Of a stretch of DNA of 64,000 nt, positions 6,804 to 40,154 are shown piece after piece. Source of the stretch: Paramoeba atlantica (Eukaryota; Protista; Discosea). A program made the translations under genes and the position numbers. The notes below the pieces were generated by a model. It was not told where the DNA came from. It searched no databases and saw only the letters and a program-made list of their open reading frames with translations. Location of the stretch: contig CDRNVI010000009.1 in assembly GCA_977017575.1 (NCBI GenBank), positions 682,001-746,000 of the forward strand. Reading direction: 5' to 3'. Each line of letters begins with the position of its first letter. Within the stretch, counting starts at the first letter, position 1.

Positions 6804-8018
6804 GGTGGGATTGAACGAATAATGTACACTTTTTTTAAATAATTTTAAATTTTTATGAAATCCTTTTTTGTGTTTCCTAGGGTGATATGTATGAATTTTT
6901 TGGATTATTAGTCAATTTTTATCTTAAAATTACGGCTAGTATTGCTTCTCTAAGGTTTCAATGAACTGCACAGGTTGCCCTCGTTTTGATTGCGCTGCTC
7001 AAATTCGCTTGACTTCAGTCGGCTCTGCCGCAGAGGAAACGTGTATGTTGTGGATGCGAAACTACAAACTCACTGTACAAAGCGTTTCCTGCGAGCGTGG
7101 GCATGAGCGGGTACTGTGTAATCTGAAGGGAGGCAAGTTCCACTGCCCAGTACGCTCCTGCCGCAATTTGATGTCACAGGACGGTCCTCTCAAGCACTCA
7201 AAGACAAAGGTGTCCGCAAAGCAGATTCTAATTGGGATCGTTTCCTTTTCTTATAGCATGCTGGGAACAGAAGTTGCAAAGGAAGAAGAAGTCTCTCAAA
7301 GAACTGTAGTTTTGCAACGCCAAATTATCGAAAAATCATTGTCTGAGGTTCATAAAATCCGTCAGCGGAACGCCGAGGGAACAGTATCCTTTATGCAAGT
7401 CGATGAGACGTGGTTCTCAAAGATCAAGCGAGGGGGAAACAACCGAAACCAGCGGGTACGCGCTGGTGGTAGCCAGATAGTTCAGACTCTGGCCGAATGT
7501 ACTCGTGACAGCAAGCTGACAGAGATACATGTCACGCCTGTGCCTCAAAAAAGCGCAGAACACTTAATTCCCCCCATCGAGGCTATGTGTGCCTCCTCGC
7601 GTACGCGGATCCATACCGACGGGGCCAGGCACAACAATTTTCTTGAAGGAAAGTATCAATGGGATTCGGTTATCCACAGAAATGAGTGGATCAGTGATTC
7701 CGGTGTGCACACTAACACCGTAGAAGGAGCAAACAGCATGTTGAAGAGAACTTTGACGCGTTGTGGCGGCCAACTTGGTAGAAGCAATGAAAACCGGCAT
7801 GAGCGTGTGCGCGCCCTGGCAGAAAAATGTAACGGATCTCTACGGGTGAATGGAGCAAATGTTTTGAAGCGAGTTTTGGAGGATCTTCGCGTGTATTGTG
7901 CGCATTATGTTCTGCAGTAAGAAGCATTTTTTTTGTTAGATAATGATCGAAGGGAAAATATCGTCTTTTTAAAAATTCTGAAAACTGAAATTTTGTACAT
8001 TATTCGTTCAATCCGACC
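6804..8018 (+). mobile_element. Structurally intact Merlin (IS1595/IS1016-like) DNA transposon
   Basis: 25-bp TIRs GGT(G/C)GGATTGAACGAATAATGTACA at 6804-6828 and 7994-8018; perfect 8-bp TSD AAGTATAC at 6796-6803 and 8019-8026. Confidence 0.95.
6961..7920 (+). CDS. Merlin/IS1595-family DDE transposase
   Basis: N-terminal Cys/His zinc-ribbon-like region; MQVDETWF, RIHTDGA and VIHRNEWISDSGVHTNTVEGANSMLKR motifs; uninterrupted 319 aa. Confidence 0.93.
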   Translation: MNCTGCPRFDCAAQIRLTSVGSAAEETCMLWMRNYKLTVQSVSCERGHERVLCNLKGGKFHCPVRSCRNLMSQDGPLKHSKTKVSAKQILIGIVSFSYSMLGTEVAKEEEVSQRTVVLQRQIIEKSLSEVHKIRQRNAEGTVSFMQVDETWFSKIKRGGNNRNQRVRAGGSQIVQTLAECTRDSKLTEIHVTPVPQKSAEHLIPPIEAMCASSRTRIHTDGARHNNFLEGKYQWDSVIHRNEWISDSGVHTNTVEGANSMLKRTLTRCGGQLGRSNENRHERVRALAEKCNGSLRVNGANVLKRVLEDLRVYCAHYVLQ

Positions 8019-8100: not shown

Positions 8101-8883
8101 ATGTACAATAATTTCAAACAGGATTTCAGGTATAAATGTACTGCATGTGTAATTCTGACGATGACTCATTCATACATATTGTATTATCTAGGTTTTACGG
8201 ACAATCAAGCGTCGTCCAGAAAGTGGAGTGAGACCGAATCGCATGGATCGCCCGGCGCACTACTCTCAGGGGCGAATCCCGATATTTCTCTCCACTCCCG
8301 ACCCGCTAAAGTCAGTTGCGTTTCTTTGCCCGTTGAGTACGAATTAATGAAACTTGTACAAAGAGTGGTAGATCGTCCCACTACATGGAACCTGGAAACA
8401 CCTGGTTGTAAATGGGTCGGAGTAGACTGTGACTTTAAAGGCAATGTGATTCGCATCAATTATCCGGCAAGACACATACGGAATGAGTTAGATATAAGAT
8501 TTTTGCCACAGACACTGAGACATTTCAACCTAAGTGCCAATAAGCTGTCCGGACGTTTTTCCTTCGTAAGCTTACCTTCGACCTTAACCTACCTTGCCAT
8601 CAATCACAACGAGTTCAGCGGCGCCACAAATTTTCTCCTTTTGCCCCTTCTGCTAACACATCTTGACATTGCGCATAACAAATTTGAAGGTGAGGTAGAT
8701 TTCTCGGCACTTCCTCCTCCCTTAGTCCGCATTTTTCTTAATGACAATGTGAAACTGGAGGGCACAGTAGACGTGCAGTGTTCATTAAAAGGTATGTACT
8801 ACAATATCGAAAACACAAAGATCATCGCACTCAACGGGCGGAGTCGCCGTCTTCTATATGAAAATTCGTTTTTCTTGTCATAG
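8101..8883 (+). CDS. Short leucine-rich-repeat protein, family copy 1 (true start may be downstream)
   Basis: LPVEYELMKL..W....CKWVGVDCD cap followed by LP..L..FNLSANKLSG-type repeats. Confidence 0.85.
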   Translation: MYNNFKQDFRYKCTACVILTMTHSYILYYLGFTDNQASSRKWSETESHGSPGALLSGANPDISLHSRPAKVSCVSLPVEYELMKLVQRVVDRPTTWNLETPGCKWVGVDCDFKGNVIRINYPARHIRNELDIRFLPQTLRHFNLSANKLSGRFSFVSLPSTLTYLAINHNEFSGATNFLLLPLLLTHLDIAHNKFEGEVDFSALPPPLVRIFLNDNVKLEGTVDVQCSLKGMYYNIENTKIIALNGRSRRLLYENSFFLS

Positions 8884-10099: not shown

Positions 10100-10473
10100 T
10101 ATTAATGAGAGGGCGATGTTCCTTCGCAATTTGCAGCTAGTGGTGAGATAACCAGCTTGGTGAGAGATCATTTCGCATTTTACCTTGGCAAAGCTGTGTT
10201 TACAAGAGAATTTTTTCTCGGAAAGTCAAAATTTGAGTCTTTCGATTCCTAGGGGGGTACGGCGGGTATGCAAAATGTGGAGGTATCTTGAACGATTAAA
10301 ATTACATGAACGATTGAAAATACATGCCACCCCGTCATTTATTAATTTTTCCTCATTTTTTAAGCAACATTTTGTGCACTTTCGTATTCACGTATTTCGC
10401 TCCAATTGTGATGTTACCCTTGCTCCAGCTTGCTGATGACGCGGAGAAATCAACGGGTTGTGAGAAAAAACAA

Positions 10474-11103
10474 ATGAGCACAACAGATCAGCCTGTATGT
10501 CATTCTCTACCTGCGAAAATCAGCTCTATTTTGTTGCCTCCTGAGCATGAGTTATCACGTTTGTTCAAAGATGCAGAAAACCTACACGTTTCATGGACAA
10601 CAAATACTTCCCTGGAACATTGGCATGGTATTGACTGCGACACAGAGCGTAACATAAAAAGAATACACTGGCCTGGTTTAGGTTTGCGTGGGGTACTGCA
10701 CTGGGAACACTTACCCACTCATCTTTGGTACTTCAACATTGCGGATAACAACCTTTTTGGGGAAGTGCCGTTTGATTGCTTACCTGCTACTCTAGAATCG
10801 CTCTATCTCTACATGAACCAGTTTTACGGTAGTAGCTTGAAGTTGTCAAGTTTGCCACAGGATCTTGAGGAACTTTCGTTGGCTGCCAATTGTTTCGAAG
10901 GCCTTGTTGATTTCGATTTGCTTCCAATATCGTTACGCTTGCTACATTTACAGCACAACCCAAAACTTGAAGGCACGTTTGATGCAGTTGAATGGCGTGA
11001 TTTGATCTACGATTTTAGAGCGACGAAAATATCGTCCAGTAACGGTATATTGCGACGTAGATCGCCCGAATTTGATCATATCGATGCCTTTTATGAGGAC
11101 TAA
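10474..11103 (+). CDS. Short LRR protein, family copy 2
   Basis: LPPEHELSRL..SW..SLEHWHGIDCD cap plus LP..L..L.L..N.F.G repeats. ATG at 10474 is preferred over the ORF-track start at 10324. Confidence 0.88.
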   Translation: MSTTDQPVCHSLPAKISSILLPPEHELSRLFKDAENLHVSWTTNTSLEHWHGIDCDTERNIKRIHWPGLGLRGVLHWEHLPTHLWYFNIADNNLFGEVPFDCLPATLESLYLYMNQFYGSSLKLSSLPQDLEELSLAANCFEGLVDFDLLPISLRLLHLQHNPKLEGTFDAVEWRDLIYDFRATKISSSNGILRRRSPEFDHIDAFYED

Positions 11104-11663: not shown

Positions 11664-12800
11664 ATGGCGATCAAGGACCATTTTCCCGATTTTGTTGCCC
11701 GTCGCTCACGGTATCACAAAATTTCGCACAGTAGTGAGAATTTAAGTGATGTTGAAGCACAAAGCGGGGAATTTGAAACAAAGTCAAAAGATAGAAATAC
11801 ATTGAGTTCTTCACCTTCGAGGTCACTAATCACCATTGACGAGGTTAGCACTCCTTGTGATGCATCCTGGAAAATCGAATCCTTTTATAGAGCACAGCTC
11901 AGCGGTTTGCTTCCAAGCGTACCACAGTTTTGCATTGAGCTTATCGTTGCTTTGCGTATAGGGGTTGAAGAAGTAAGCGAAAAGTTAGACAGCTTACTCC
12001 AGTTACAAAGGGCACACTTAACTATCCATTTTCGTTCACCAGCAGAACGCGATCAAGAAGAAAGGAACATTGAACATTTTACAGAGACTATTTCAGACTC
12101 TTTCAAAGCACTCGAAAGGAAACTGCATAAACTTGAGCGTGAAATCGAAAAAAATAAAAGCCTCATTCTTTTCGGAACGCAACACACGCTCGTTTCCAAT
12201 ATAAGAAAAGCAATCGTCATAAAAGCTGGAAAAATATCACGACTGTTTCGCGAGCACCAAGCGGAGTATCTATCAGACCTTCGTTCTCACAAAGCAAAGG
12301 TAGCGAAGTTTCGCCAGGGAGTTCTAGGGGAAAGACCTGTAAGCTTTGCTGTGAACGTAGACAACTGCGACGCAAAGGAGCGCGCGACGCTTGATACTAA
12401 GGAAGACTCCTTTGAAAATGATTTTGAAAAGTTGGATCGCTTAGAGCAGCTCGACCGTTATGAGGCCGAGGGGATGTCTACAGAGGAAGCACAGGCAATG
12501 CTTCTGCAGCAACAAGAGCTTCAGAGGAATGACACAGAACTGCTACGGATACGAAAGTCAATACGATCTGTGCACGATCTGTTCTCTACTGTCAATTCTT
12601 TTGTAACGGAGCAGGGAACTTTGCTGGACCGGATCGACTGTAACCTTACGATGACTCGGGATCATGTGACTTCTGGAGTTCAAGAGCTAATCAAAACAAG
12701 AAAGTACCAGAGACAGACAAAGTACAAGCTCATCTTTTTGCTTATATTTGTTTTGATTCTTAGTGCCGTAGTATTAATAGGGGTTCGCGTTGCAAAGTAG
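11664..12800 (+). CDS. STX16: Qa-SNARE syntaxin 16 / Tlg2-like
   Basis: N-peptide MAIKDHFPDFV, Habc-like helices, SNARE motif VHDLF..V...VTEQGTLLDRIDCNL, C-terminal transmembrane segment. Confidence 0.85.
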   Translation: MAIKDHFPDFVARRSRYHKISHSSENLSDVEAQSGEFETKSKDRNTLSSSPSRSLITIDEVSTPCDASWKIESFYRAQLSGLLPSVPQFCIELIVALRIGVEEVSEKLDSLLQLQRAHLTIHFRSPAERDQEERNIEHFTETISDSFKALERKLHKLEREIEKNKSLILFGTQHTLVSNIRKAIVIKAGKISRLFREHQAEYLSDLRSHKAKVAKFRQGVLGERPVSFAVNVDNCDAKERATLDTKEDSFENDFEKLDRLEQLDRYEAEGMSTEEAQAMLLQQQELQRNDTELLRIRKSIRSVHDLFSTVNSFVTEQGTLLDRIDCNLTMTRDHVTSGVQELIKTRKYQRQTKYKLIFLLIFVLILSAVVLIGVRVAK

Positions 12801-12959
12801 AATACAAAGATAAGATGACTTGCACACACTTCACCTCGGCATTTATTCCATCTCAAGGAAGTTTCGCAACATTTCGGAACCAAGCTCGTTATTAAGGTGT
12901 GTCAGATTTACCTCACACTTACCTTTCTTCCTCTCTTTTATCCTTTTTTCCGGATATCC

Positions 12960-13690
12960 AATTCTCGCATTATTCCTCTCTCCAACCTCTACCACTTTCC
13001 TCCACCCTCACCCCCTCCCCCCATGGACACCCCCATCCACAAATACTACGTCGGCACGCAAACCACCCGGGACCAAGCCCACCGGTTCATGGACCGCGCC
13101 CTACGGGACTACGCCCCCACGCTCCTCACCATTGTCGACGAGTTTGCAAAGCCCGCGACGGGAACCGGAGATAAGCACTTCGACTCAAAAACTGAAATGT
13201 CTCCCTCCCCCCCCAGACTGCCGTATCTTCCTCTGGTCGTGGCCGTGACCCCCCCGGGGGTTGTGCGGGATGTGCTCAACACGTTATGGGGGGTGCAGTC
13301 CCCTCCCGGGGATGGGGCCATGGCCCCGGGGCGTGCCGAACTGAACCCCGAGGCCCTGGAGGGGCTGCTGCGGCGCCACCCCGAGCGCGGCTCGGAGGTC
13401 CGGGAACTGTGTGTCCTGTTAGCGAAGTTTGCCGCGTCCGGGGTGCGGGTGTTCTTTGTGTGGACCACCGACGGGGCGCTGCTTCCGGTGGTGGGGGGGA
13501 GCGGGGGGGAGGGGGGGGAGGAGGGGGAGGGGTGGGAAAAGCTCAGCGCGCGGGATGTTTCGCGGTTGACGGGGATTATGAATCGGGTGCTGGCGGCGGA
13601 GGGGAGGCGGATAACGCCGAAATCGTAGGAAGGGCGGGGAGGTTGTATTTTTTGAGGGGCGTTCATCGTGGTGGGGATGGCAAAGAATGT
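12960..13690. other. Skew-switch island 2 (switch near 13240)
   Basis: C-rich 12980-13220; hand count at 13501-13560 gives 38 G vs 6 C, with G4-like runs. Confidence 0.8.
13023..13628 (+). CDS. Hypothetical protein (201 aa from ATG 13023)
   Basis: Coding-strand ORF MDTPIHKYYVG... with globular-looking composition; no family recognised. Confidence 0.6.
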   Translation: MDTPIHKYYVGTQTTRDQAHRFMDRALRDYAPTLLTIVDEFAKPATGTGDKHFDSKTEMSPSPPRLPYLPLVVAVTPPGVVRDVLNTLWGVQSPPGDGAMAPGRAELNPEALEGLLRRHPERGSEVRELCVLLAKFAASGVRVFFVWTTDGALLPVVGGSGGEGGEEGEGWEKLSARDVSRLTGIMNRVLAAEGRRITPKS

Positions 13691-13769
13691 GAACGGAAGT
13701 AAACATTTACGTGAGTTTAAGGCATGTATATTCACCATTTAGACGTTAGATCTAATTTATAAAAACAGT

Positions 13770-14735
13770 ATGACACGACAAAAACGGAAAGCTGGAGGTG
13801 CGCAGCCTCCGACAAAGCCTCCAATATATGAGAACGTTCTCTTGCAACAGGACATCGATACAAGCTCCGTGAAGATGTTGTGCCAACGATTAAGCAGTAG
13901 TGATGTTAGACTACGGGATCGAGCCCTTGAGAGAGTTCCTGCGATGTTGAGTGCAAGAGTAAGACAGGCGGTAGACGACACACGTGCGGAGGTGTGGGAC
14001 ATGCTGGAGGAGGACATGAAGTACCTGTGGAAGGGTTTATTCTTTTATTACTACCACACGGATGGCTGGAAAGCCCAGGATGCTGCCGCTGACACGATCA
14101 CCCGGTGGACGTCTGAAGTGTTCTCTAAGGAAACTACTTTGAAGTCGTGCGTGTTGTGGGCAAAGGTAGGCTGGGTTGCACTTACGCGCGAGTGGCCTCA
14201 CATCGATAAGTGGAGATTGAACAAGTACATGTACTTTGTGCGACGATATGTTTTCCATCTTTTGCGAACTATCCCAATCGACGAGTTCAGCACCCTCGTT
14301 CGAAGTTTATTCGCTCATGACGATGTACAGGACCTTTGTATGCATGTCGTTGACGTGCTTCTTGACGAGTGTTTGCGAGCCCCTAGACTTTCCAATGGCG
14401 TGCTTGACGAAGTGTTGGAGACTGTCGTCCTACGGACATTGACAAGACATCCGAATCGAGCACTGCTCAATCGCATTGAGGTCTGGGTTCTGAAGCCATT
14501 AAAACGATTATGCTTCGAAATAGAATCCCCAGAAACAGACCCAAAAACTGCGTCAAAAAATCTGTCAGTGCCCCAACAGGAGCAAACTACGTCTCGTAGT
14601 CATCTCATTAAGACAGTACGCACTCTGGTTAAGAAAATGAAACATTCTATTATTGATCCTGACACATTAGATGCAAATCGATCTAATTTAATTCGCCTAC
14701 ATAAAGATCTCTCCTTAAAAGTCCTGGACGAGTGA
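13770..14735 (+). CDS. RRP1: Ribosomal RNA processing protein RRP1/Nop52
   Basis: LSSSDVRLRDRAL, LWKGLFF, REWPHIDKWRLNKYMYFVRR Nop52 motifs. Confidence 0.9.
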   Translation: MTRQKRKAGGAQPPTKPPIYENVLLQQDIDTSSVKMLCQRLSSSDVRLRDRALERVPAMLSARVRQAVDDTRAEVWDMLEEDMKYLWKGLFFYYYHTDGWKAQDAAADTITRWTSEVFSKETTLKSCVLWAKVGWVALTREWPHIDKWRLNKYMYFVRRYVFHLLRTIPIDEFSTLVRSLFAHDDVQDLCMHVVDVLLDECLRAPRLSNGVLDEVLETVVLRTLTRHPNRALLNRIEVWVLKPLKRLCFEIESPETDPKTASKNLSVPQQEQTTSRSHLIKTVRTLVKKMKHSIIDPDTLDANRSNLIRLHKDLSLKVLDE

Positions 14736-25269: not shown

Positions 25270-28200
25270 ATGAGGAGAAGTCTGATAATATTGCTGTTGC
25301 TGTCGAATCTCCTTGGAAGCGATTTACATGACACTACTAAAAACACATCGAAGGAGAGCGCCGGACTTCCCAAACAACAAGACGCCGCAAGACTCGGAAA
25401 TGCTTCTCTCCCCTTTATTGAAAAGGAAGGTAGTTCGAAGAGTCCTCAGTCGGATGTTCAACATCCAGATACCAAGGAGCATTCGCAGGTTACGGAACCC
25501 GCCACGACCCCGCATGGTGTCGCTGATTCGTCTGTTGAAGCACATTTACATTCGCCTTCTGAGGAGTTAATCCCTGCGCCTGTGACGATGCTTCCGAAAG
25601 ATCCGCAACAAAGGCGTCGCTTGTCGATTGATAGCCCTGTTCCACACCCTGTTCAAGATCGACGCAAGATTGCTCGATCCGGTCGACCATATATTCCGGC
25701 CCCCAAATCCGGTCGTAGGAATGCATCACAGCCGTATCCAATGCCTGAACGACCAGGTGCATCTTCTCCGGAGGAAAGCCCGCCTCGCTTTGAAGGGGAA
25801 CTACCTGTGCATCAAATAGGAATTCCAAGGCAGTATATGGGTCCTCCGTCCAGCACAACGATGCTGGGTCGTTTCCAGTACTCGACACTTCCCTCGTTGC
25901 AAACCTCCTTTCAACGCAAAGTGCCGTACGGCGCAGAGCGAATACTCCGGGAATCTGCCGAGAGCAATCCTTCACGAGACGCTCGTCTAAGGCGCATGTC
26001 AGTTTCTAGGGCACAAGAACAACAAAATCTTGATGATACTAACCGGTCGTCTGTTGGGCGGCAGACACCAGTAACTCCGACTACGGAAAAGACACAAGCA
26101 CAGCCTGTTTTTAAGGAACCGCAACGTGTACGAAGCTTTGAACTCCGCGAAACACTTGCTCCCCGACGTAAATCTCAGGAAAAAGTTCTCTCCGCCATCG
26201 GAAAATTCGGGTCGAGGCGATCATCCAAGCCTTTGAACGTGGAGGGCTCCTCTGACAATGCTTCCTTACCTTCACAGACCTCTGTAGAGGAGACTTTTCA
26301 AGGACGTCGCATTCCTCCTCCTCGACCTACCTCAGCACCGATTACAGAACAAGTACCACTTCGATCGAAGCCGTTAACCTCTGTGTTTTCGCAAAGTACA
26401 TCTGAACTGAGCAGCCCAACACACCCATCCCAGGGCTCTACCCGAAAGAAGTCTCCTCGAGAGAAACATGGCATATTTAGCATAAACAGGTATTTCAAAC
26501 CTCAAGCAACCCCTCCACGAATTGGACGAAAAGAAGGTACATTGCCTGCGCAGAAAGCTGCGAAACCTCCTGTCGACCCTACAAAGATCACGGGAAAAGA
26601 AACCCCGCGAAGGAGGCGCTCGATTGAACCACCGCACGCCCAAAAACCTGTTCCTCCGATCCAGCGATCTCAAAGCGTCGCTTTGGGAGCCACTCTGTCT
26701 TCCTCCGAACCCCAACAACACCGTGGATGGTGGAAGCAAGAATTACAAAACAAACTAGAGAACGAGGAGCGTGAGTTAAAAACGCGGTCAACCCCACGAG
26801 CCAGTCCACGACAGGGTCCGCGTCTGCAACGCACACCGGAGAGTAGTGCCTCACGAAGTCTCCCTCCCATGACCCCTCCGATGCCTTCTCCTTCCCAAAC
26901 CCCAAAGAGAAGGGAGTCATTGGGACCGGTAGCATTGCTTACGATGGGAGGTCTTACTAAAGATAAGCGATTCACAGCCCCCTTGTCCCGACGAAGCAAA
27001 TACTCCTCCCTCTCGGATGTGCGCCAGTATGTGCAAAAGAAAGAGGCGGGAGATTTAAGCCCCATATCCAGTTTACCCAACGTCGCGGAGAGAATGCGAG
27101 AGCGCTGGGGTAGCGAGCTTCGACGACCACGCTCGATGGCTCCGGAGAAAATAAATCGTCTGCACTCGTCGCTTTCGAGAAGCAGCTCCTCGAGTGATTT
27201 AATGAGGCTGACTCGACCCTCAACGCGCCCGCGGAGGACAGAAAATAGGATTGAAGAGGAGAGTGAGAATGAGGAAGAAGCTTTGGAGGACCTAGACATG
27301 GGTGTGTCATCACCTCATCAACCGAGGAGTCGAGAACTAGCGTCCTCGTCGAAATTGTCAGACACGGATAGCTCACCGTCGCTTACGCCAGTCTTTGAAG
27401 AAAAGGAATCTGAGGAAACTCCAGACTTAGATCCCCGAGAGGCGTTGCAGTACGCTCTTTCCATTGTCCGAACGACCGTAGAGGGCGAGATTCCGGTGCG
27501 ACTCCCAGAAGAAAAAGTAACCATCCAACCGCGACAAGACTTCGTGCGTGAGCTTCTGCTTGTGGATGGGCTTGCCGACGACACGTTAAGCGCTCGGCAG
27601 GCAATTCTTGGACAGCATGTACGACACATACTCACACCGCAGCGCTACTTCCTGAGTGTTTGCAAAAACTACCTACCCGGTATTGCATACATCATCCACG
27701 AGCTACCTCCTTTAGAAGGTTATTATGGTACCCCGATTGCAACATTCAAGCCCGTAAATCTAGAAATGGGCACAACGATGTTCAGAAAATATCATTCCGG
27801 GTACAAGTTTGCATTTCACCGTGCCTTTCCGAAGGGTCAAGGTGTTCATCGTGAGATAGCGGCCCATCGTTTGAACTCAATAGTGAATGCGATGACCGCA
27901 GTACGCGTGGGTTTCCGTATTCCTACCGGTCTCCCCTTGCGCATTGGTGGTTTAGGTGGCGGCTACTTACAGGAAAGAGTTCTACCAGTTACCGTTCCCG
28001 ATTTTCACCACCCCATGTCACTTGACTACATGGTTGATTGTCAAATGAACCACATATTCAACCTGCTAACCATGAACTCCTATACGCAAGGCACAATTTA
28101 CGGTCACATACGAGAGCTCCTAACCGCGGGGGTTATCGCGCAGGAACAAACCCATGCCGCGCAAACATTTTTTCGTCCCGGTCTGTACAGTACGAACAAC

Positions 28201-28917
28201 GCGTACATTCTCCCAGACACCGAAAAAATGCTGAGTATTACCGATCTGTCACTACGCTTAACCAGGACGCCATACCTTGACATTCCATTCCTACCCCCCG
28301 TAGATGCCTTTCTCCGTGCGTTAAAAATGGACCAGTTTCAGGAACTGCTGGAGAATCTGAAGTTCTCGCCTACAATACAAACCAATGTTCAAATCGCGAT
28401 TCGTGTCATCCAAGCGTGCGCGTTGCGAGGCCTTACTCCGATTCAAGCCATGCGATTCCTTTACACACAACGTCCTGTTAATTTTTTCGCTATTTTATAC
28501 ATCCGTCTACCGCGGGAAAACGGAGCGTTCAGTGAGGAACAATGGCAACACTTTGAACGCATTCTTGATCATTCGTTAAATGAAATCTTTGTACCCAATG
28601 CGTACCATTGTGATACGATAGCCCAACCGGACTACAGCAAAAGTCCGAGGGGCCTTGAGGTTTGTCCCTCACGCCTTCGAACGGGTCCCGACGGACAGTT
28701 AATTGATCGTTCTGCGGTGAGCTGGGGCAGAGCTCTCACACACTACGAGGGGGACGAAAAAGTCATTCCCTCTGCCTACACAAAAATGGCCTTTGAGCAC
28801 ACGGTTTCAGGTTCTAAAATTTCATGGTGGCGACGTTGGCTCTACAATATAAAACAATTTTTGCGGCCCTACGTGTGGAATTTCCGTAGACTCATGCGTG
28901 AGGAATACCGGTGGTAG
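25270..28917 (+). CDS. Signal-peptide protein with a long disordered region and a C-terminal PI4K type II-like (pseudo)kinase domain, paralogue 1
   Basis: MRRSLIILLLLSNLLGS; TFKP, REIAAHRLN, FRIPT, GYLQERV, TMNSY, NNAYILPD, RGLTP motifs. Confidence 0.82.
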   Translation: MRRSLIILLLLSNLLGSDLHDTTKNTSKESAGLPKQQDAARLGNASLPFIEKEGSSKSPQSDVQHPDTKEHSQVTEPATTPHGVADSSVEAHLHSPSEELIPAPVTMLPKDPQQRRRLSIDSPVPHPVQDRRKIARSGRPYIPAPKSGRRNASQPYPMPERPGASSPEESPPRFEGELPVHQIGIPRQYMGPPSSTTMLGRFQYSTLPSLQTSFQRKVPYGAERILRESAESNPSRDARLRRMSVSRAQEQQNLDDTNRSSVGRQTPVTPTTEKTQAQPVFKEPQRVRSFELRETLAPRRKSQEKVLSAIGKFGSRRSSKPLNVEGSSDNASLPSQTSVEETFQGRRIPPPRPTSAPITEQVPLRSKPLTSVFSQSTSELSSPTHPSQGSTRKKSPREKHGIFSINRYFKPQATPPRIGRKEGTLPAQKAAKPPVDPTKITGKETPRRRRSIEPPHAQKPVPPIQRSQSVALGATLSSSEPQQHRGWWKQELQNKLENEERELKTRSTPRASPRQGPRLQRTPESSASRSLPPMTPPMPSPSQTPKRRESLGPVALLTMGGLTKDKRFTAPLSRRSKYSSLSDVRQYVQKKEAGDLSPISSLPNVAERMRERWGSELRRPRSMAPEKINRLHSSLSRSSSSSDLMRLTRPSTRPRRTENRIEEESENEEEALEDLDMGVSSPHQPRSRELASSSKLSDTDSSPSLTPVFEEKESEETPDLDPREALQYALSIVRTTVEGEIPVRLPEEKVTIQPRQDFVRELLLVDGLADDTLSARQAILGQHVRHILTPQRYFLSVCKNYLPGIAYIIHELPPLEGYYGTPIATFKPVNLEMGTTMFRKYHSGYKFAFHRAFPKGQGVHREIAAHRLNSIVNAMTAVRVGFRIPTGLPLRIGGLGGGYLQERVLPVTVPDFHHPMSLDYMVDCQMNHIFNLLTMNSYTQGTIYGHIRELLTAGVIAQEQTHAAQTFFRPGLYSTNNAYILPDTEKMLSITDLSLRLTRTPYLDIPFLPPVDAFLRALKMDQFQELLENLKFSPTIQTNVQIAIRVIQACALRGLTPIQAMRFLYTQRPVNFFAILYIRLPRENGAFSEEQWQHFERILDHSLNEIFVPNAYHCDTIAQPDYSKSPRGLEVCPSRLRTGPDGQLIDRSAVSWGRALTHYEGDEKVIPSAYTKMAFEHTVSGSKISWWRRWLYNIKQFLRPYVWNFRRLMREEYRW

Positions 28918-29227
28918 AGTTAGAAGCCTTCACTTTGTAAATACCTAACCAACCATCTTTGAGCTTTTCTGTGTATTTTCATGGTAAGTTTGCGTTTGCG
29001 CTCTTATTATCTACTTGCATTTTGTGTATATCCTTTTTTCGTTATTTTGTACATAACTTTGAACTAGAAGTAGGACGGTTAAACTAAAATTTTGTCGTAC
29101 CAAATTTTATAAACTAGCATAAGTCGTCTGAACCACTACACTGATAAGTCAATCACAGGTATCTATAGATTATTTTTACCTTTTCAAAGATTTCTTGCAG
29201 TGAATTCCCAGCCTTTTTCTAACGCGA

Positions 29228-30649
29228 ATGCTGATCTTCGTTGGCCTACTCAGCTGTCTTGGGCTGTGCTGCCATGAGGAGAAAACGTTTCAAACGAGAA
29301 CCCCCGTCCCGAGAATTTCGAAACATGGGAACAGAGAGAAATCTCCTTCCCGTTCGCGGCCAAAAGTTCATGAAAATGTGCGCTCTCTAAGAGAAACATT
29401 AGCTCCACCGATGCCGCATGATATTGAAGAGCTCTCCCCCATCCTTCCCCCACGTGAAGACTCTTCTAACTCCCCTCTTGGGGGTCAACCACTATTCGCG
29501 TCGCCTTTCCGACTTGCGACTCAATTCGTATCACCGAATTTTGATAACTCTATTTCTCGAGCCGTTCAGTCTCTAGTCGAAGAAAGTTCTCTGAACGAGT
29601 TCGAAATAGCTTTGTTGCGCAAAGCTCAAGAAGTGTTTGGCAACAAGCGGGGCTACCACATTGAAAAGGAGGAGGGACGACCGATGTCAGGCAATTTTTA
29701 TACCGTCCGTGCATCACATAGAATTCTGGATTTATGGAGTCAGCCGGATATTCTATTTAATTTCCGACCAACGAATTTGGAGGTCGGAACACTGAACTAC
29801 CGCATGCATACTCACGCAGGTCGATTCCCTTTTGAAAAAGAGTACACCCCGGGGTTAGGTGCCGTGCGAGAATATGCTTCCTATCGACTACATGCCCTAA
29901 TGGCGGCAAGAGGGTGCAATTTCCTGTTCAGCATCCCTCCAACTATCCCTGTATGGATTGAAGGCTTTGGTACTGGAATACTACAGCAAGAAGTCCAAAA
30001 ACCATCACTCGGGTGCTCTACACCCGATCATCCTCCGAATCTTACGGCGGAATACCAACTACGAGTCCTTTTCCAGATACTAACGTTGAATCCAGAGGAA
30101 GACCTGGGCTGCATAGGAAAGCTTTCTTCAAAAACCCGGAGAGAGGAAGTCCAACGAAACAAACGAAATGCTCTATTTTTTTCAAAGCATATATTGAGTT
30201 TTCCCGATTCAAAGCATATCATGAATGTTACCACCATGGGGTTCCGTGCTCTTAGAGTTCCTTATATGAAGGAGACGTTTGATCCTAAGGTCCGTGCTAT
30301 AGTTTTGGGCTTGAAAGCAGAAGAGTACGTTCCAATGCTGCGAGTTTTTGGATTTTCCACAGCAGTGTGTATCAATTTCGAGATAGCACTTGAGGCCATA
30401 CAGTTCTGTGTAAGGAAAAAGAAGTTTACACCTTTGCAAACGATACGCTTCGCGCTAACTGAAGAGCCCATTGCTTTCCTTCCCTTTATATTCTCACAAC
30501 TCGAAGGGAGCGAGGAGGCCGACACACGTACCTTTGTGCGCGAAATGCTTACTTTGTTTAGCCAGCGAGTCAAGCCGTCTAATAAATACAAGTACGAATA
30601 CGATGGAGTATCTGAACATGATTACCGAGGCGTGCTCACAGGATGCTAA
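29228..30649 (+). CDS. Signal-peptide PI4K type II-like pseudokinase, paralogue 2
   Basis: MLIFVGLLSCLGLCC; NFRP, REYASYRLH, FSIPPT, GILQQEV, TLNPEE, KKFTP motifs colinear with paralogue 1. Confidence 0.8.
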   Translation: MLIFVGLLSCLGLCCHEEKTFQTRTPVPRISKHGNREKSPSRSRPKVHENVRSLRETLAPPMPHDIEELSPILPPREDSSNSPLGGQPLFASPFRLATQFVSPNFDNSISRAVQSLVEESSLNEFEIALLRKAQEVFGNKRGYHIEKEEGRPMSGNFYTVRASHRILDLWSQPDILFNFRPTNLEVGTLNYRMHTHAGRFPFEKEYTPGLGAVREYASYRLHALMAARGCNFLFSIPPTIPVWIEGFGTGILQQEVQKPSLGCSTPDHPPNLTAEYQLRVLFQILTLNPEEDLGCIGKLSSKTRREEVQRNKRNALFFSKHILSFPDSKHIMNVTTMGFRALRVPYMKETFDPKVRAIVLGLKAEEYVPMLRVFGFSTAVCINFEIALEAIQFCVRKKKFTPLQTIRFALTEEPIAFLPFIFSQLEGSEEADTRTFVREMLTLFSQRVKPSNKYKYEYDGVSEHDYRGVLTGC

Positions 30650-31310
30650 GTCTCTTCTTTTGCCATGGGTGATAGCCCATGACGTAAAACTTCCCGACCA
30701 TGGACTGTCACATCTACTCGATACAATGCAGTTTTTCTACTCTCATTTTTCGTTGGTAGGAAATGGTGCCTTTCTCAGTGGGTATGATTTTTAGACGTTG
30801 TATTTCCTGTCGTGAATCAATTTTTTCGCGATCCGGCGCTCCATGCGAAGAAAAGTTTACGTGATTATTTTTTAGTGCATTATGATGTTCATTGTGCGGA
30901 ATATTTAGGAGGGGGCTTGAATTTCTTTCCCTAAGAAAGCAAGGTGCAGCCTTTTCAATGATCCAATAGCATTACGCTTGCAGGATGACTCCCTCTCACT
31001 TCCTGGGAAGGACGGCTTATTTGCATTGAATGTAACGTGCAGCAAAAGGCGATGTGATTTTTGGAGGGACCCAGCGAAGCAAAAAAGGCTCGAATAATTC
31101 ACTTTTTCAGTGGCTAATGTACTGAATATAATTATTCATGTGTATGCGATTGATGTTCGTATGATTGATGTATATTTCGAGACTATTGGTACCGTAGGCT
31201 ATACGGCCGTTTACACACTATAGCGAGAGATCTATTTTGATAACTTCAGCTTAAAATGTATATTTTTTCTACACGAGACGGTTTCTATAGAGCTTTTTAA
31301 AGAATTTTTT

Positions 31311-34043
31311 ATGCCGCGATTGCTAATTCCCAAGTGCTCCTTTCCGAGCCCTATCCGCGTGCTCCTGTGCTTAACCCTTTTCTTGTCCGCTACTCGGGCA
31401 CCCCCTAGAACGGGAATCGGTAACCCTCTCCCCACCCTCACCCCACGCATTTCTCTTCCCCCCATCACCGCCGCCGAGGTCCAACCCCGACACCACCAAC
31501 CCCCTCGTGAGACTCACCCGCACCGCAGCCCCACCTTCGCCCTCCCCCCCGCCCATGTCACAAACCTTACCCGTTCCTACGAGTCCTACCTGCAACCCCA
31601 CCCGGGGAGCCTCGAAAATGCGTCCTCTCTCCCCTACGCTCATCCGCTCACCCACCCCTCCCATGGACCCTCCCGTGGCAGCGCGGACCCCCAGCCCCCA
31701 CCCCCCCTACGTTGGCTCCCCCCGCGTGAGACCCTTGCGGGCTATCCTAACCCACAAAGCCGTGGGAATGGGAGTAGCCGTAGCCGTAACCCCCGTGATC
31801 CCTATCCCGAATCCCACACAGGCGCCCCGAATCCCCCCGAGGCGTACAGCCCCGCGCGGGGCGCCTACCCGTGGCCCGGGCCTCCGTTGTACCGTGTGCC
31901 GTACCCTACCCCCTGTGGTTCGTCTCCTGAGTCGGTGGATGAGACCATGATAAAAGGGGGGCACGGGGGAAGCTCGGAAGAGACAGCGTCCCATCCTTTT
32001 TTGAAACGGTATGCTGCTGCTACTGTGGCAGTGGCGAACACTACGGCAGCTACGACAAGTACAAGTCGTAGTACAACGAATCAAGAAGGGGAGGCTGTGA
32101 AGGTGGCTCGACCTACCGCCCATTTGCCCTCTCCGCGTAATCCCCCGTATTCCCCGTTTGCGGATGTCCCGGTGGGTACGACCCCGGAGAACCCCGGGAG
32201 TCGGTTTCTTTCGCGAGCCCCGAGCCCCGCGACCTTGGGGGGTTCCGCGGGGGGAAATCTCGCGGGTACCCCTCGTCGTACCATGACGGAGGAGGAGCTG
32301 GAGGTACGGCGCGAGCTGGCTGCGATTTTCAACCTCGAGCAAGCCCCCTGCCCGTCGCCGTTGCCCGATCAGGAGTACGGGGAGCAGTGTATGGGGAAAA
32401 AGGGAGCCGGGTCGTGTCCCACAGGGTACGCGAATCCGTTTCCTCAATATGTGAAGGAGGGAAAGTACGGGGAGAATCCTCCGATGGTTTATCCCGCCCC
32501 GCAACACCTTCCGCTGGGAAAAGATGAGGCCGAGGAGGGGGACGCGATGCAGCATCTTCTCCACGCCCTGGCCGAGGAGGCGGTCGCGACCCATGCCGCG
32601 GAGTACCCCGTGAGTCCGCACAGCTTTCGTACCCGGATGGATGCCCCCGCCAAGATCCTACGTGACTCCCTGGACAATGCCCGGGCCCGGAGCTGTCACG
32701 TGGTAAGCCCCCTCGGGACCCACCCGCCCGAAATGGACCCCGCGGTGGGGTACCTCGTAGAGGCCGTCTCCCAGCGCCTTAGCCAACCCTTTGACTACCG
32801 TCTGAAAGCGAAGGAGACGCCCAGCGGGCAGGCCTACGTGATCCAGAACGGGTCCTGGGGGGTGTGGCAGCGCGTCCACGAGTACTTCTACCCCAGCCAG
32901 GTTGCCCTGTTCAAGCCGCTCGCCCAGGAGCGCGGCAACGCGGTCAACCCGCAGGGACGAAAGAACCTCTACGGCGGGGGGGACGGCCACTGCGTGTTCC
33001 CCTCCGGGGAGTTCTACCTGCGGGATGCGGTGGCGTACGCGCTGGACCAGCACAGTGCCGGGGTGTTCCACATCCCGGTGACGACGGTGTCCCACATGGA
33101 GGGACTCGGGGAGGGGGTGCTCTCGGAGTATATTACCCCTGCGAATTCCGATGCCACCCCCCATTTGGGATTGGAACGTACCCGGGCGCGACAATTTCGG
33201 CTGTTGTTTGATCTGTTTTTTATGAACGGTGACGCTCGAAGGGAGCCGATGTTTGGGAAGAATCTGTGGGCTACACGGCATAGTCCCGGGGAACGGCCCG
33301 AGCCGGATGGGGTGGAGGAGGAAGGCTCCATGACCGGAGGGAGCGGTACGCGAGGAGGCCGCACGCCGTTGCCTCAGGGTCGTACGGGGCACTACTACTT
33401 ACACAACTCCTACATCTTACCGGAGACATTTCCACGGTATGATGAGCTTATTGCGAGTTTTCGAAATGCCTACGGGTGTGGTCGGACCCCTGGAAAAGGG
33501 ACGCCGGGAAGTCAAGATGGTCGTGGCTCCGTTCCCAATGTGAGCGCGGGCTCCGAGGATAGTGACGCCTACGAGCTCGAGTCCTGGCACCCCGATGTGT
33601 TGCGCTTCCTGAACTCGATTGAAGACCCATGGTACAAGTACTACTCCGTACTTCGTCGGTTTGGATTCTCCTCGCAGACAATTTCGCGAGTCGCGTTGTC
33701 GGTGTATACTGTGCAGCGCTGTGCGGCGTCGGGCTTAACTCCGGACGAGATTGTACACTTTGCTTATACCTCTGCTCACCCCTTTATGCCTTTCGTGTTT
33801 CGGTTATTATCGGGGCTGGAGAAAGGGGTGGGGACTCGGGAACAAGTGTTGCGTGCTCCCCAAGTCATTCATCGAGTGTTGGAAGGATCTTTACAGGCGT
33901 TTAAGCGAGAGACAGCGTCGAATTCTCACGAGCAGGGTTCCGCCAGGTCGAAGTCCTATTTTTCCCTGTTTTCAAGGGAAAAAGTACCAGAATCCCATGG
34001 GAGTTATTATGACTTACAGCGTAAAGCAGATGGATGGTGGTAG
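31311..34043 (+). CDS. Signal-peptide PI4K type II-like (pseudo)kinase, paralogue 3
   Basis: RVLLCLTLFLSA; ALFKPLAQERGNAVNPQG, RDAVAYALD, FHIPVT, GVLSEYI, FMNGDAR, LHNSYILPE, SGLTP motifs. Confidence 0.82.
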   Translation: MPRLLIPKCSFPSPIRVLLCLTLFLSATRAPPRTGIGNPLPTLTPRISLPPITAAEVQPRHHQPPRETHPHRSPTFALPPAHVTNLTRSYESYLQPHPGSLENASSLPYAHPLTHPSHGPSRGSADPQPPPPLRWLPPRETLAGYPNPQSRGNGSSRSRNPRDPYPESHTGAPNPPEAYSPARGAYPWPGPPLYRVPYPTPCGSSPESVDETMIKGGHGGSSEETASHPFLKRYAAATVAVANTTAATTSTSRSTTNQEGEAVKVARPTAHLPSPRNPPYSPFADVPVGTTPENPGSRFLSRAPSPATLGGSAGGNLAGTPRRTMTEEELEVRRELAAIFNLEQAPCPSPLPDQEYGEQCMGKKGAGSCPTGYANPFPQYVKEGKYGENPPMVYPAPQHLPLGKDEAEEGDAMQHLLHALAEEAVATHAAEYPVSPHSFRTRMDAPAKILRDSLDNARARSCHVVSPLGTHPPEMDPAVGYLVEAVSQRLSQPFDYRLKAKETPSGQAYVIQNGSWGVWQRVHEYFYPSQVALFKPLAQERGNAVNPQGRKNLYGGGDGHCVFPSGEFYLRDAVAYALDQHSAGVFHIPVTTVSHMEGLGEGVLSEYITPANSDATPHLGLERTRARQFRLLFDLFFMNGDARREPMFGKNLWATRHSPGERPEPDGVEEEGSMTGGSGTRGGRTPLPQGRTGHYYLHNSYILPETFPRYDELIASFRNAYGCGRTPGKGTPGSQDGRGSVPNVSAGSEDSDAYELESWHPDVLRFLNSIEDPWYKYYSVLRRFGFSSQTISRVALSVYTVQRCAASGLTPDEIVHFAYTSAHPFMPFVFRLLSGLEKGVGTREQVLRAPQVIHRVLEGSLQAFKRETASNSHEQGSARSKSYFSLFSREKVPESHGSYYDLQRKADGWW
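31370..33500. other. Skew-switch island 4 (main switch near 31950, second weaker cycle at 32.6-33.4 kb)
   Basis: C-runs at 31420-31720 and G-runs at 32150-32600 and 33060-33400 within paralogue 3. Confidence 0.7.
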
Positions 34044-39515: not shown

Positions 39516-40154
39516 ATGTCACGCCTTTGTACCTTCCAGGACGACCTTCCGCTTCTCCGGACGTCCAAAATCCGTCACGTCGGATTTCCTGTAGAATACG
39601 AGATGGAGCGTTTTCTGCAAGGGGTGTTTGAACAACACAACTCATGGAGTGCGCACATTCCCATCGCTGAGTGGCATGGGATCGAGGTAGGGAAGGGCTC
39701 GAAGGCCTCCGCAGTGTTAGAAGTGAATTGGCGTTCTCAGCGTATCCGTGGGATCCCGCAGTGGTCTTTACTTCCCAAATCGGTCCGAAAATTGGATGTC
39801 GGGAGTAACAGTCTGACGGGGGAGATTGATCTTGCTGCGTTTCCACGAGAAATGAGGCACTTGTATCTTTGCTACAATGAGTTTCACGGACACATCGATT
39901 TAAACGCATGTCCACCGGAATTGCTCCATTTGTATCTCAATCATAACCATTTCTCTGGCCCCGTGAGGTTGGCATCACTGCCATCTAACATCCAGTTTCT
40001 TCACTTGGGAAGTAATCGGTTCGGAGGCATAGCAGATGTAGAGCACCTACCTGTAACTTTAATTACATTGGATTTAACGCACAACGGTTTCCGAGGCTTT
40101 GCTCCTGAGGATATACCGGACAACGTGCGAGTTGGACACCAAATCGTGGCATAG
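39516..40154 (+). CDS. Short LRR protein, family copy 4
   Basis: FPVEYEMERF..SW..IAEWHGIEV cap; IDL..LP..L..L.L..N.F.G repeats. Confidence 0.88.
   Translation: MSRLCTFQDDLPLLRTSKIRHVGFPVEYEMERFLQGVFEQHNSWSAHIPIAEWHGIEVGKGSKASAVLEVNWRSQRIRGIPQWSLLPKSVRKLDVGSNSLTGEIDLAAFPREMRHLYLCYNEFHGHIDLNACPPELLHLYLNHNHFSGPVRLASLPSNIQFLHLGSNRFGGIADVEHLPVTLITLDLTHNGFRGFAPEDIPDNVRVGHQIVA

Follow-up and report, generated by a model that had tools for sequence, protein, structure and literature searches.

A tandem trio of predicted type II phosphatidylinositol 4-kinase-like pseudokinases with signal-like N-termini from an apparent relative of Perkinsela

Architecture of the three tandem genes

We analyzed a stretch of 64,000 nucleotides (the window) of contig CDRNVI010000009.1 from the Paramoeba atlantica assembly GCA_977017575.1 (positions 682,001 to 746,000). 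It contains three consecutive genes, ORF1 (open reading frame 1; 25270..28917), ORF2 (29228..30649) and ORF3 (31311..34043), whose products carry C-terminal domains related to type II phosphatidylinositol 4-kinases (PI4Ks) and are predicted to be pseudokinases. All lie on the + strand with intact reading frames. Each protein is composed of a signal-like N-terminus, a linker and the PI4K-II-like domain of ~330-430 residues. ORF1 (1215 residues) has a linker of ~780 residues, and its domain is followed by a C-terminal tail rich in Trp, Arg and Tyr (domain and tail, 27610..28914, +). In ORF2 (473 residues), a linker of ~85 residues precedes the domain (29528..30646, +). ORF3 (910 residues) has a Pro-rich linker of ~440 residues and large loop insertions in its domain (32712..34040, +). 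The ORF1 and ORF3 domains were defined by paralogy and alignment, and the ORF2 domain was used for structure modelling. The C-terminal 370-440 residues of the three proteins are paralogous, with tblastn E values of 1.6e-30 for ORF1-ORF2, 5e-8 for ORF1-ORF3 and ~1e-5 for ORF2-ORF3. All three pairs are thus linked, confirming three adjacent and diverged paralogues as proposed in a preliminary description made from the letters of the DNA. A tblastn search of the 64-kb window found no fourth copy of the domain.

A single hydrophobic stretch of 11-13 residues is found at the N-terminus of each protein (maximum Kyte-Doolittle hydropathy over 11 residues, 2.6-2.9). A hydropathy scan of the full proteins revealed no further transmembrane-like segments, and none of the three has a hydrophobic C-terminal tail. 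A C-terminus resembling an endoplasmic reticulum (ER) retention signal was not noticed on reading the three proteins, for which no dedicated test was made. The hydrophobic stretches have the shape of signal peptides and are too short for membrane anchors, so by these rules we read them as predicted cleavable signal peptides. In ORF1, the predicted signal peptide MRRSLIILLLLSNLLGS (25270..25320, +) has a basic n-region and a short hydrophobic h-region (11-residue hydropathy 2.85). In ORF2, it is MLIFVGLLSCLGLCC (29228..29272, +). In ORF3, it includes IRVLLCLTLFLSATRA (31311..31400, +), with the h-region VLLCLTLFLSA at residues 17-27.

The start of ORF2 is the first ATG 3' of a pyrimidine tract followed by AG. 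The automatic gene call for ORF3 (P0002) begins at Met213. A conserved motif, RETLA, is located upstream of it at residue 139, which argues that the upstream part is translated and that the long form is correct. The reads gave no spliced-leader evidence for the starts, none of the runs being clearly RNA and also covering the 5' ends. Loose contig ends in sequencing run X4 were considered as such evidence and rejected. Those at 29237, 30833, 33836 and 33889 coincide with GATC sites and start with these four letters, and the run has patchy coverage, suggesting a Hi-C library whose junctions are not biological.

The linkers contain 9-14% Ser, 12-17% Pro and 7-11% Arg, in agreement with the Ser/Pro/Arg-rich region noted earlier in each protein. 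They have no tandem repeats of note. The pentapeptide RETLA is the one exact motif common to these otherwise unalignable regions. Translated in all six frames, the 64-kb window contains it exactly three times, once per linker and in frame: at residues 293-297 of ORF1 (26146..26160, +; CGC GAA ACA CTT GCT), 55-59 of ORF2 (29390..29404, +; AGA GAA ACA TTA GCT) and 139-143 of ORF3 (31725..31739, +; CGT GAG ACC CTT GCG). The codons differ among the copies, so it is at the protein level that the motif is kept, and not through recent gene conversion. The wider context VRS..LRETLAP is common to ORF1 and ORF2, and a similar ELRQLAE is found in P0004, an ORF1 orthologue. We rejected RETLA as a Plasmodium export element (PEXEL): the pattern RxLxE fits ORF2 alone (RSLRE) and neither ORF1 nor ORF3. 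As a guess, RETLA may be a processing or sorting site. Opposite the ORF3 linker, where the G+C content is 60%, two antisense reading frames of 304 and 244 residues are found (31707-32621 and 32658-33392, -). They are most likely compositional by-products and not genes.

Domain ancestry and catalytic residues

Pfam hmmscan of the three full proteins did not detect the kinase domain PF00454 even at E<1; the best match was noise (DUF7849, E 0.2). PF00454 was not detected in the orthologues P0004-P0010 either. A sequence search of the PDB with a three-sequence profile produced no match, and a word-indexed homology search with ORF2 returned ORF2 itself alone. A HMMER profile of the three domains was then compared with 1.84 billion representative proteins, giving 21 matches: the window's own proteins, six relatives, one repetitive protein (P0011) and ten weaker matches. 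The relatives (P0004, P0005 and P0007-P0010) have E values from 1e-43 to 3e-17. All ten weaker matches (E 4e-8 to 9e-4) contain PF00454, and one of them (P0018) has a ubiquitin-like domain as well. When a profile of family members only (alignment A3) was compared with one of true PI4Ks only (alignment A4), hhalign reported a probability of 99.5% and an E value of 3.5e-22 over 232 columns.

Two AlphaFold2 models of the ORF2 domain were generated, one from an alignment with true PI4Ks and a control from family sequences only. For the first model (predicted template modelling score, pTM, 0.75; predicted local distance difference test, pLDDT, 68), PI4K IIalpha and IIbeta occupy the top eight Foldseek places. 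VIA-align gave Z scores of 15.6-17.2 for nine PI4KII entries. The next folds, CtkA, Fam20C and HipA, score ~10, PI4KIIIbeta 9.2, and Vps34 and PI3K-gamma at most ~8. Matches of this model among AlphaFold database clusters are PI4K-gamma-type proteins, with E values down to 1.7e-9. For the control model (pTM 0.62), PI4KII still fills the first eleven places. Both models thus give the same ranking, in which the type II fold is closer than type III PI4K or PI3K. The part that is best conserved and best modelled is the helical C-lobe (GFS...N..A...IQ.C..GLTP.E..F.YT, pLDDT ~90), suggesting a conserved binding surface.

Together, the profile search, the profile-profile comparison and the fold ranking establish a type-II/gamma-like ancestry for the trio's domains. 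The preliminary description had proposed such an ancestry from motifs. These motifs (F[KR]P, RE.A.Y.L, IP.T, G.L[QS], YILP and GLTP) are indeed present, and they align with the same motifs of true PI4Ks.

Nine family members, the trio and its six relatives, were compared residue by residue with seven aligned true PI4Ks. GGTY, FKP, LNxDRHxGN and IDHG are invariant in true PI4Ks (alignment A4). The metal-binding Asp of IDHG, the equivalent of DFG, is present in 7/7 true PI4Ks and lost in 9/9 family members, where it is replaced by N, K and H in the trio and by H, H, P, N, N and H in the orthologues. IDHG itself aligns with TNNA in ORF1, SKHI in ORF2 and LHNS in ORF3. The DRH column reads YTQ, EED and DAR, respectively, with loss of the Asn further downstream. 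Only ORF3 retains an Asp in the catalytic column, and the DRHxxN loop is deleted in the Perkinsela proteins of the ORF2 type. The Lys of FKP is kept in ORF1, ORF3, P0004 and P0005, substituted by Arg in ORF2, P0007 and P0010, and by Cys or Ala in P0008 and P0009. The Gly-rich loop is degraded in the family and deleted in the ORF1 type. The catalytic erosion reported earlier is therefore real. The triplets first given for the DRH column (NSY, NPE and GDA) were shifted by one to two residues, and the YLHN given for ORF3 should read LHNS.

Since the IDHG Asp and the DRHxxN loop are lost in all nine members, these proteins are predicted to be pseudokinases. No alternative set of catalytic residues is conserved across orthologues, and pseudokinases are the best reading of the data. 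The retained FKP Lys and the ORF3 Asp leave room for nucleotide binding or odd chemistry.

Orthologues, divergence and genomic setting

The six relatives come from Perkinsela or Perkinsela-like genomes. P0008 is KNH05665.1 of Perkinsela sp. CCAP 1560/4 and belongs to the ORF3 type. P0005 and P0022, of the ORF2 type, correspond closely to KNH05176.1 ("hypothetical protein"); P0005 differs from it in the start and in one residue. A second, Perkinsela-like assembly contains P0004, P0007 and P0009, each on its own contig and the three contigs alike in depth, and P0010 is from a third assembly. In a maximum-likelihood tree, ORF1 groups with P0004 (support 98/96), ORF2 with P0005, P0007 and P0010 (92/92), and ORF3 with P0008 and P0009 (97/94). 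In the ORF2 and ORF3 clades, the two with more than one Perkinsela sequence, the window copy branches outside the Perkinsela sequences, so the triplication predates the split from Perkinsela. The trio is thus an ancient set, and each of its genes is matched one-to-one by an orthologue in Perkinsela genomes. A long branch of 1.9 changes per site separates the family from active PI4Ks. KNH05665.1 (L002:10001-11536) is annotated as "replicase". This label is unsupported: the protein has no Pfam match and is a PI4K-II-like pseudokinase, which corrects a public mis-annotation.

The N-termini of the orthologues are clear in the Perkinsela ORF1 and ORF3 types, with P0004 and P0009 being signal-like, and weak in the ORF2 type. 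By hydropathy rules, N-terminal signals are predicted in ORF1-3, with a mixed picture among the orthologues. At the other end, proteins of the ORF1 type share a conserved Trp/Arg/Tyr-rich tail (28730-28914 in ORF1), which ends in ISWWRRWLYNIKQFLRPYVWNFRRLMREEYRW in ORF1 and in LFIQPLLYEVQKFFYGYYRF in P0004. This tail looks like an amphipathic membrane-interface helix. The C-terminus of ORF3 is also WW.

The Perkinsela copies are dispersed, whereas those in the window are in tandem. The gene adjoining the Perkinsela ORF3-type gene was considered as a paralogue and ruled out (hhalign probability 0.1%), so the tandem arrangement is not conserved. A SNARE-Nop52 gene pair is located near the trio (11664-14735) and near the ORF2-type gene in two Perkinsela-like genomes (L007:1860-3952 and L008:1448-3398). 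Despite protein identities of 21-38%, the shared pair represents residual microsynteny, a trace of shared ancestry of the locus. Between the window and Perkinsela CCAP 1560/4, Hrd1 is 36% identical and the family 29-31%. These values indicate that the organism of the window is only a distant relative of Perkinsela CCAP 1560/4. ORF1 and P0004 are 29% identical.

The closest active PI4Ks include those of Apiculatamorpha spiralis (P0013) and Papus ankaliazontas (P0017), free-living prokinetoplastids described in PMC7859406. No family members were recovered from free-living prokinetoplastid transcriptomes, Bodo or trypanosomatids, an absence from a very large database that nevertheless falls short of proof. 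The free-living prokinetoplastids gave catalytically intact PI4Ks only, consistent with the earlier expectation that free-living bodonids have no orthologues of the trio.

Between Perkinsela lineages, the family is 31-45% identical. The corresponding values are 68% for RsmB, 45% for Pelota, 38-41% for the SNARE and 40-43% for MIF4G. Since the family diverges about as much as neighboring genes, there is no signal of an arms race. An effector arms race was considered on this basis and is unsupported, the family being not clearly faster than SNARE, MIF4G or Pelota. The three Perkinsela-like genomes (L002/L006 and L005/L007/L008) are syntenic yet extremely diverged, beyond what their shared genus label suggests.

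Compared with contigs from further sequencing samples of this organism, 5.3 kb of sequence shows 12 differences, which are confined to ORF2 and ORF3. Nine differences are nonsynonymous and three synonymous, giving a ratio of nonsynonymous to synonymous rates (dN/dS) of ~1, with 12 sites being too few for a conclusion; seven of the nine nonsynonymous ones are in the linkers. Contigs 100% identical to the 3' end of ORF1 and to part of ORF3 are present in a run guessed to be RNA, a weak hint that the trio is transcribed.

The window as a whole is a one-strand, intron-free gene array of the kinetoplastid type. It contains genes for Not1, a JmjC/F-box protein, a SNARE, Nop52, patatin, aminopeptidase P, a ribosomal S8-like protein, Dus and Hrd1. 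The best named matches of aminopeptidase P and Hrd1 are from fungi and animals at ~40% identity, and one metagenomic Hrd1 is 47% identical, which was of no help in placing the organism taxonomically. A 319-residue reading frame at 6961-7920 (+) matches the ISXO2-like/IS1595 DDE transposase domain (PF12762, E 1.2e-9), placing a bacterial-type transposase within the kinetoplastid gene array. Three short leucine-rich-repeat genes (212-260 residues) are scattered in the array (8101-8883, 10324-11103 and 39516-40154, +) and may be a small paralogous family. An Rfam scan of the whole window produced zero matches.

Possible roles and known systems

We consider it fairly probable that ORF1-3 represent an old three-member family derived from a kinetoplastid type-II-like PI4K, catalytically dead and equipped with a signal peptide, whose products are most likely exported or surface modules without catalytic activity. 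On descent from a kinetoplastid PI4K of the type II (plant gamma-like) kind, the family would have acquired a signal peptide at the N-terminus and, after it, a disordered Ser/Pro/Arg-rich linker. The residues for phosphotransfer have been lost, namely the IDHG metal-binding Asp, the DRHxxN loop and, for the most part, the Gly-rich loop. The proteins would then enter the ER. Because no transmembrane segment, hydrophobic C-terminal tail or retention-like C-terminus was seen, their most likely destination would be the cell exterior or the cell surface, where they could function as binding or scaffold modules. If the organism lives free in the host cytoplasm like Perkinsela, its exterior would be the host cytosol or the host interface. 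Tanifuji et al. (2017; PMC5601477) proposed that Perkinsela may secrete proteins to its own plasma membrane or into the host cytoplasm. A set that is fixed at three genes and diverges to an ordinary extent is less in keeping with an effector arms race than with a conserved role in the cell or at the interface.

That the trio may act on host phosphoinositide membranes is an attractive but speculative idea. A specific form of it is unlikely in our estimate: the trio would be exported into the amoeba cytoplasm, and the dead domain would dock on host membranes containing phosphatidylinositol or phosphatidylinositol 4-phosphate, or on type II PI4K partners, and so control traffic around the symbiont. 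RETLA would then be a processing or export signal, a kinetoplastid counterpart of PEXEL and the Toxoplasma export element (TEXEL).

Several points weigh against an exported, non-catalytic family. The confidence of the structure models is moderate (pLDDT 59-68). ORF1 and ORF3 keep the FKP Lys, and ORF3 the Asp of the catalytic loop. The signal peptides of ORF1-3 are predicted by hydropathy rules, and the N-termini of the Perkinsela ORF2 type are weakly hydrophobic. The family is small, with three genes and no lineage-specific expansion seen, and its divergence (31-45% identity) is like that of neighboring genes. The endosymbiotic lifestyle of the window's organism is an assumption, and the destination of the proteins past ER entry is conjectural.

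Some of these points would suit proteins that stay in the organism's own secretory or endolysosomal lumen (ER, Golgi or lysosome), with a housekeeping, non-catalytic or regulatory role that follows the logic of Fam20A and has no part in the host. The same signal-peptide-like N-termini apply, a fixed one-to-one-to-one set with ordinary divergence is as expected for a cellular function, and Fam20C/Fam20A are among the weaker structural neighbors (Z ~10). We regard luminal residence as somewhat unlikely, since the proteins have no transmembrane anchor and no ER-retention-like C-terminus was noticed. The family is also found only in Perkinsela genomes and the window's organism, the free-living prokinetoplastid transcriptomes having given active PI4Ks only, and luminal housekeeping proteins seldom have long disordered linkers that change fast. 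Alternatively, the hydrophobic N-termini may be membrane anchors or mis-assigned starts, and the proteins would face the organism's own cytosol as pseudokinase partners of the active enzyme, modulating the organism's PI4K or its membrane traffic. Bona fide type II PI4Ks are membrane proteins on the cytosolic face. The weak N-termini of the Perkinsela ORF2 type, one gene model of which begins with MGPSLGVCC and resembles an acylation site, and the ORF3 gene call at Met213 are consistent with this location. However, a transmembrane anchor would need more than the 11-13 residues of the h-regions, the linkers are open over ~85-780 codons, RETLA is conserved in the protein upstream of ORF3 Met213, and the ORF2 ATG is the first after the pyrimidine tract and AG. 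A cytosolic role is quite unlikely in view of these features.

The retained residues raise the question of activity. The proteins could still be enzymes with a non-canonical active site, like the oddities of the WNK, SelO and Fam20 type, and function as secreted atypical kinases. The FKP Lys in ORF1, ORF3, P0004 and P0005 and the ORF3 Asp at the catalytic column would allow this, and plant PI4K-gamma relatives have been reported as protein kinases. Nevertheless, the orthologues have no candidate catalytic residue in common. The Lys is changed to Cys or Ala in the Perkinsela ORF3 type and to Arg in the ORF2 type, the IDHG Asp is absent from every member, the Asn of the loop has been lost, and proteins of the ORF1 type have no Gly-rich loop. 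Retained activity is thus very unlikely. That the genes are decaying relics under relaxed constraint is scarcely credible. The nine nonsynonymous and three synonymous sample differences (dN/dS ~1) would agree with decay. However, all three reading frames are uninterrupted, the longest over 1215 codons, as are those of the orthologues in three Perkinsela genomes so deeply diverged that Pelota is 45% identical. Conserved motifs run through the family, and of the nine nonsynonymous changes, seven are in the linkers.

On how Perkinsela and its amoeba host communicate, the genome paper offers only speculation about secretion (PMC5601477). Our analysis defines a concrete, conserved set of three candidates for the symbiont-host interface. 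A further addition is a lineage of pseudokinases that descends from type II PI4K and is apparently routed into the secretory pathway, together with a new short conserved linker motif, RETLA, which could be a mark of processing or sorting in these organisms. If export into the host is true, the trio would provide the first effectors from a non-plastid endosymbiosis of one eukaryote in another. We found no description of such a family in the literature on Perkinsela PI4K, secretion or effectors, or on PI4K pseudokinases with signal peptides, in line with the preliminary description.

Human PI4K2A and PI4K2B (PDB 4HNE, 4YC4 and 4WTV) share the fold of the trio's domain, with the Z scores of 15.6-17.2 extending over ~250 residues, and their FKP, RExAAY, VPxT, GxLQ and YxLP motifs are colinear with the trio domains. 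Unlike these kinases, the trio has a signal-like N-terminus and a long disordered linker, has lost the catalytic loop and the IDxG Asp, and is invisible to PF00454. The CCPCC palmitoylation motif of metazoan type II PI4Ks is absent, and the trio's domains have no adjacent cysteines. PI4K-gamma-type kinases of plants and protists, including P0013 and P0017, are the closest sequence relatives outside the family and the closest fold clusters in the AlphaFold database. Their FKPxxxExGxxxNPxG segment is still resembled by ORF3 and its orthologues. They differ in retaining GGTY, the Lys, DRHxGN and IDHG, and have no hydrophobic N-terminus in the sequences read. The N-terminal ubiquitin-like domain of plant PI4K-gamma was not found in the trio by Pfam, and its place is taken by the signal-like segment and the low-complexity linker.

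The N-terminal PI 4-kinase of Legionella LepB (PDB 4JW1) is a distant structural neighbor (Z 7.3), and a LepB_N cluster is among the language-model neighbors. We found no specific sequence relationship between LepB and the trio. The likeness to LepB and other translocated bacterial phosphatidylinositol kinases lies in the idea of a kinase-like module delivered to the host. LepB, by contrast, is an active enzyme from a bacterium, which delivers it through a type IV secretion system.

The trio is not an expanded effector family like the ROPs or FIKKs. ROP families are large and rapidly diversifying, whereas the trio is a fixed set of three genes whose secretion is predicted. The fold lineage is also different, being type II PI4K in the trio and eukaryotic protein kinase or Fam20 in the secretory pseudokinases of the Toxoplasma ROP5/ROP2 family and vertebrate Fam20A. 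What the trio has in common with these proteins is a signal peptide, predicted in the trio, joined to a kinase-like fold with degraded catalytic residues. ROP5/ROP2-family and Fam20A pseudokinases act by binding and not by phosphotransfer.

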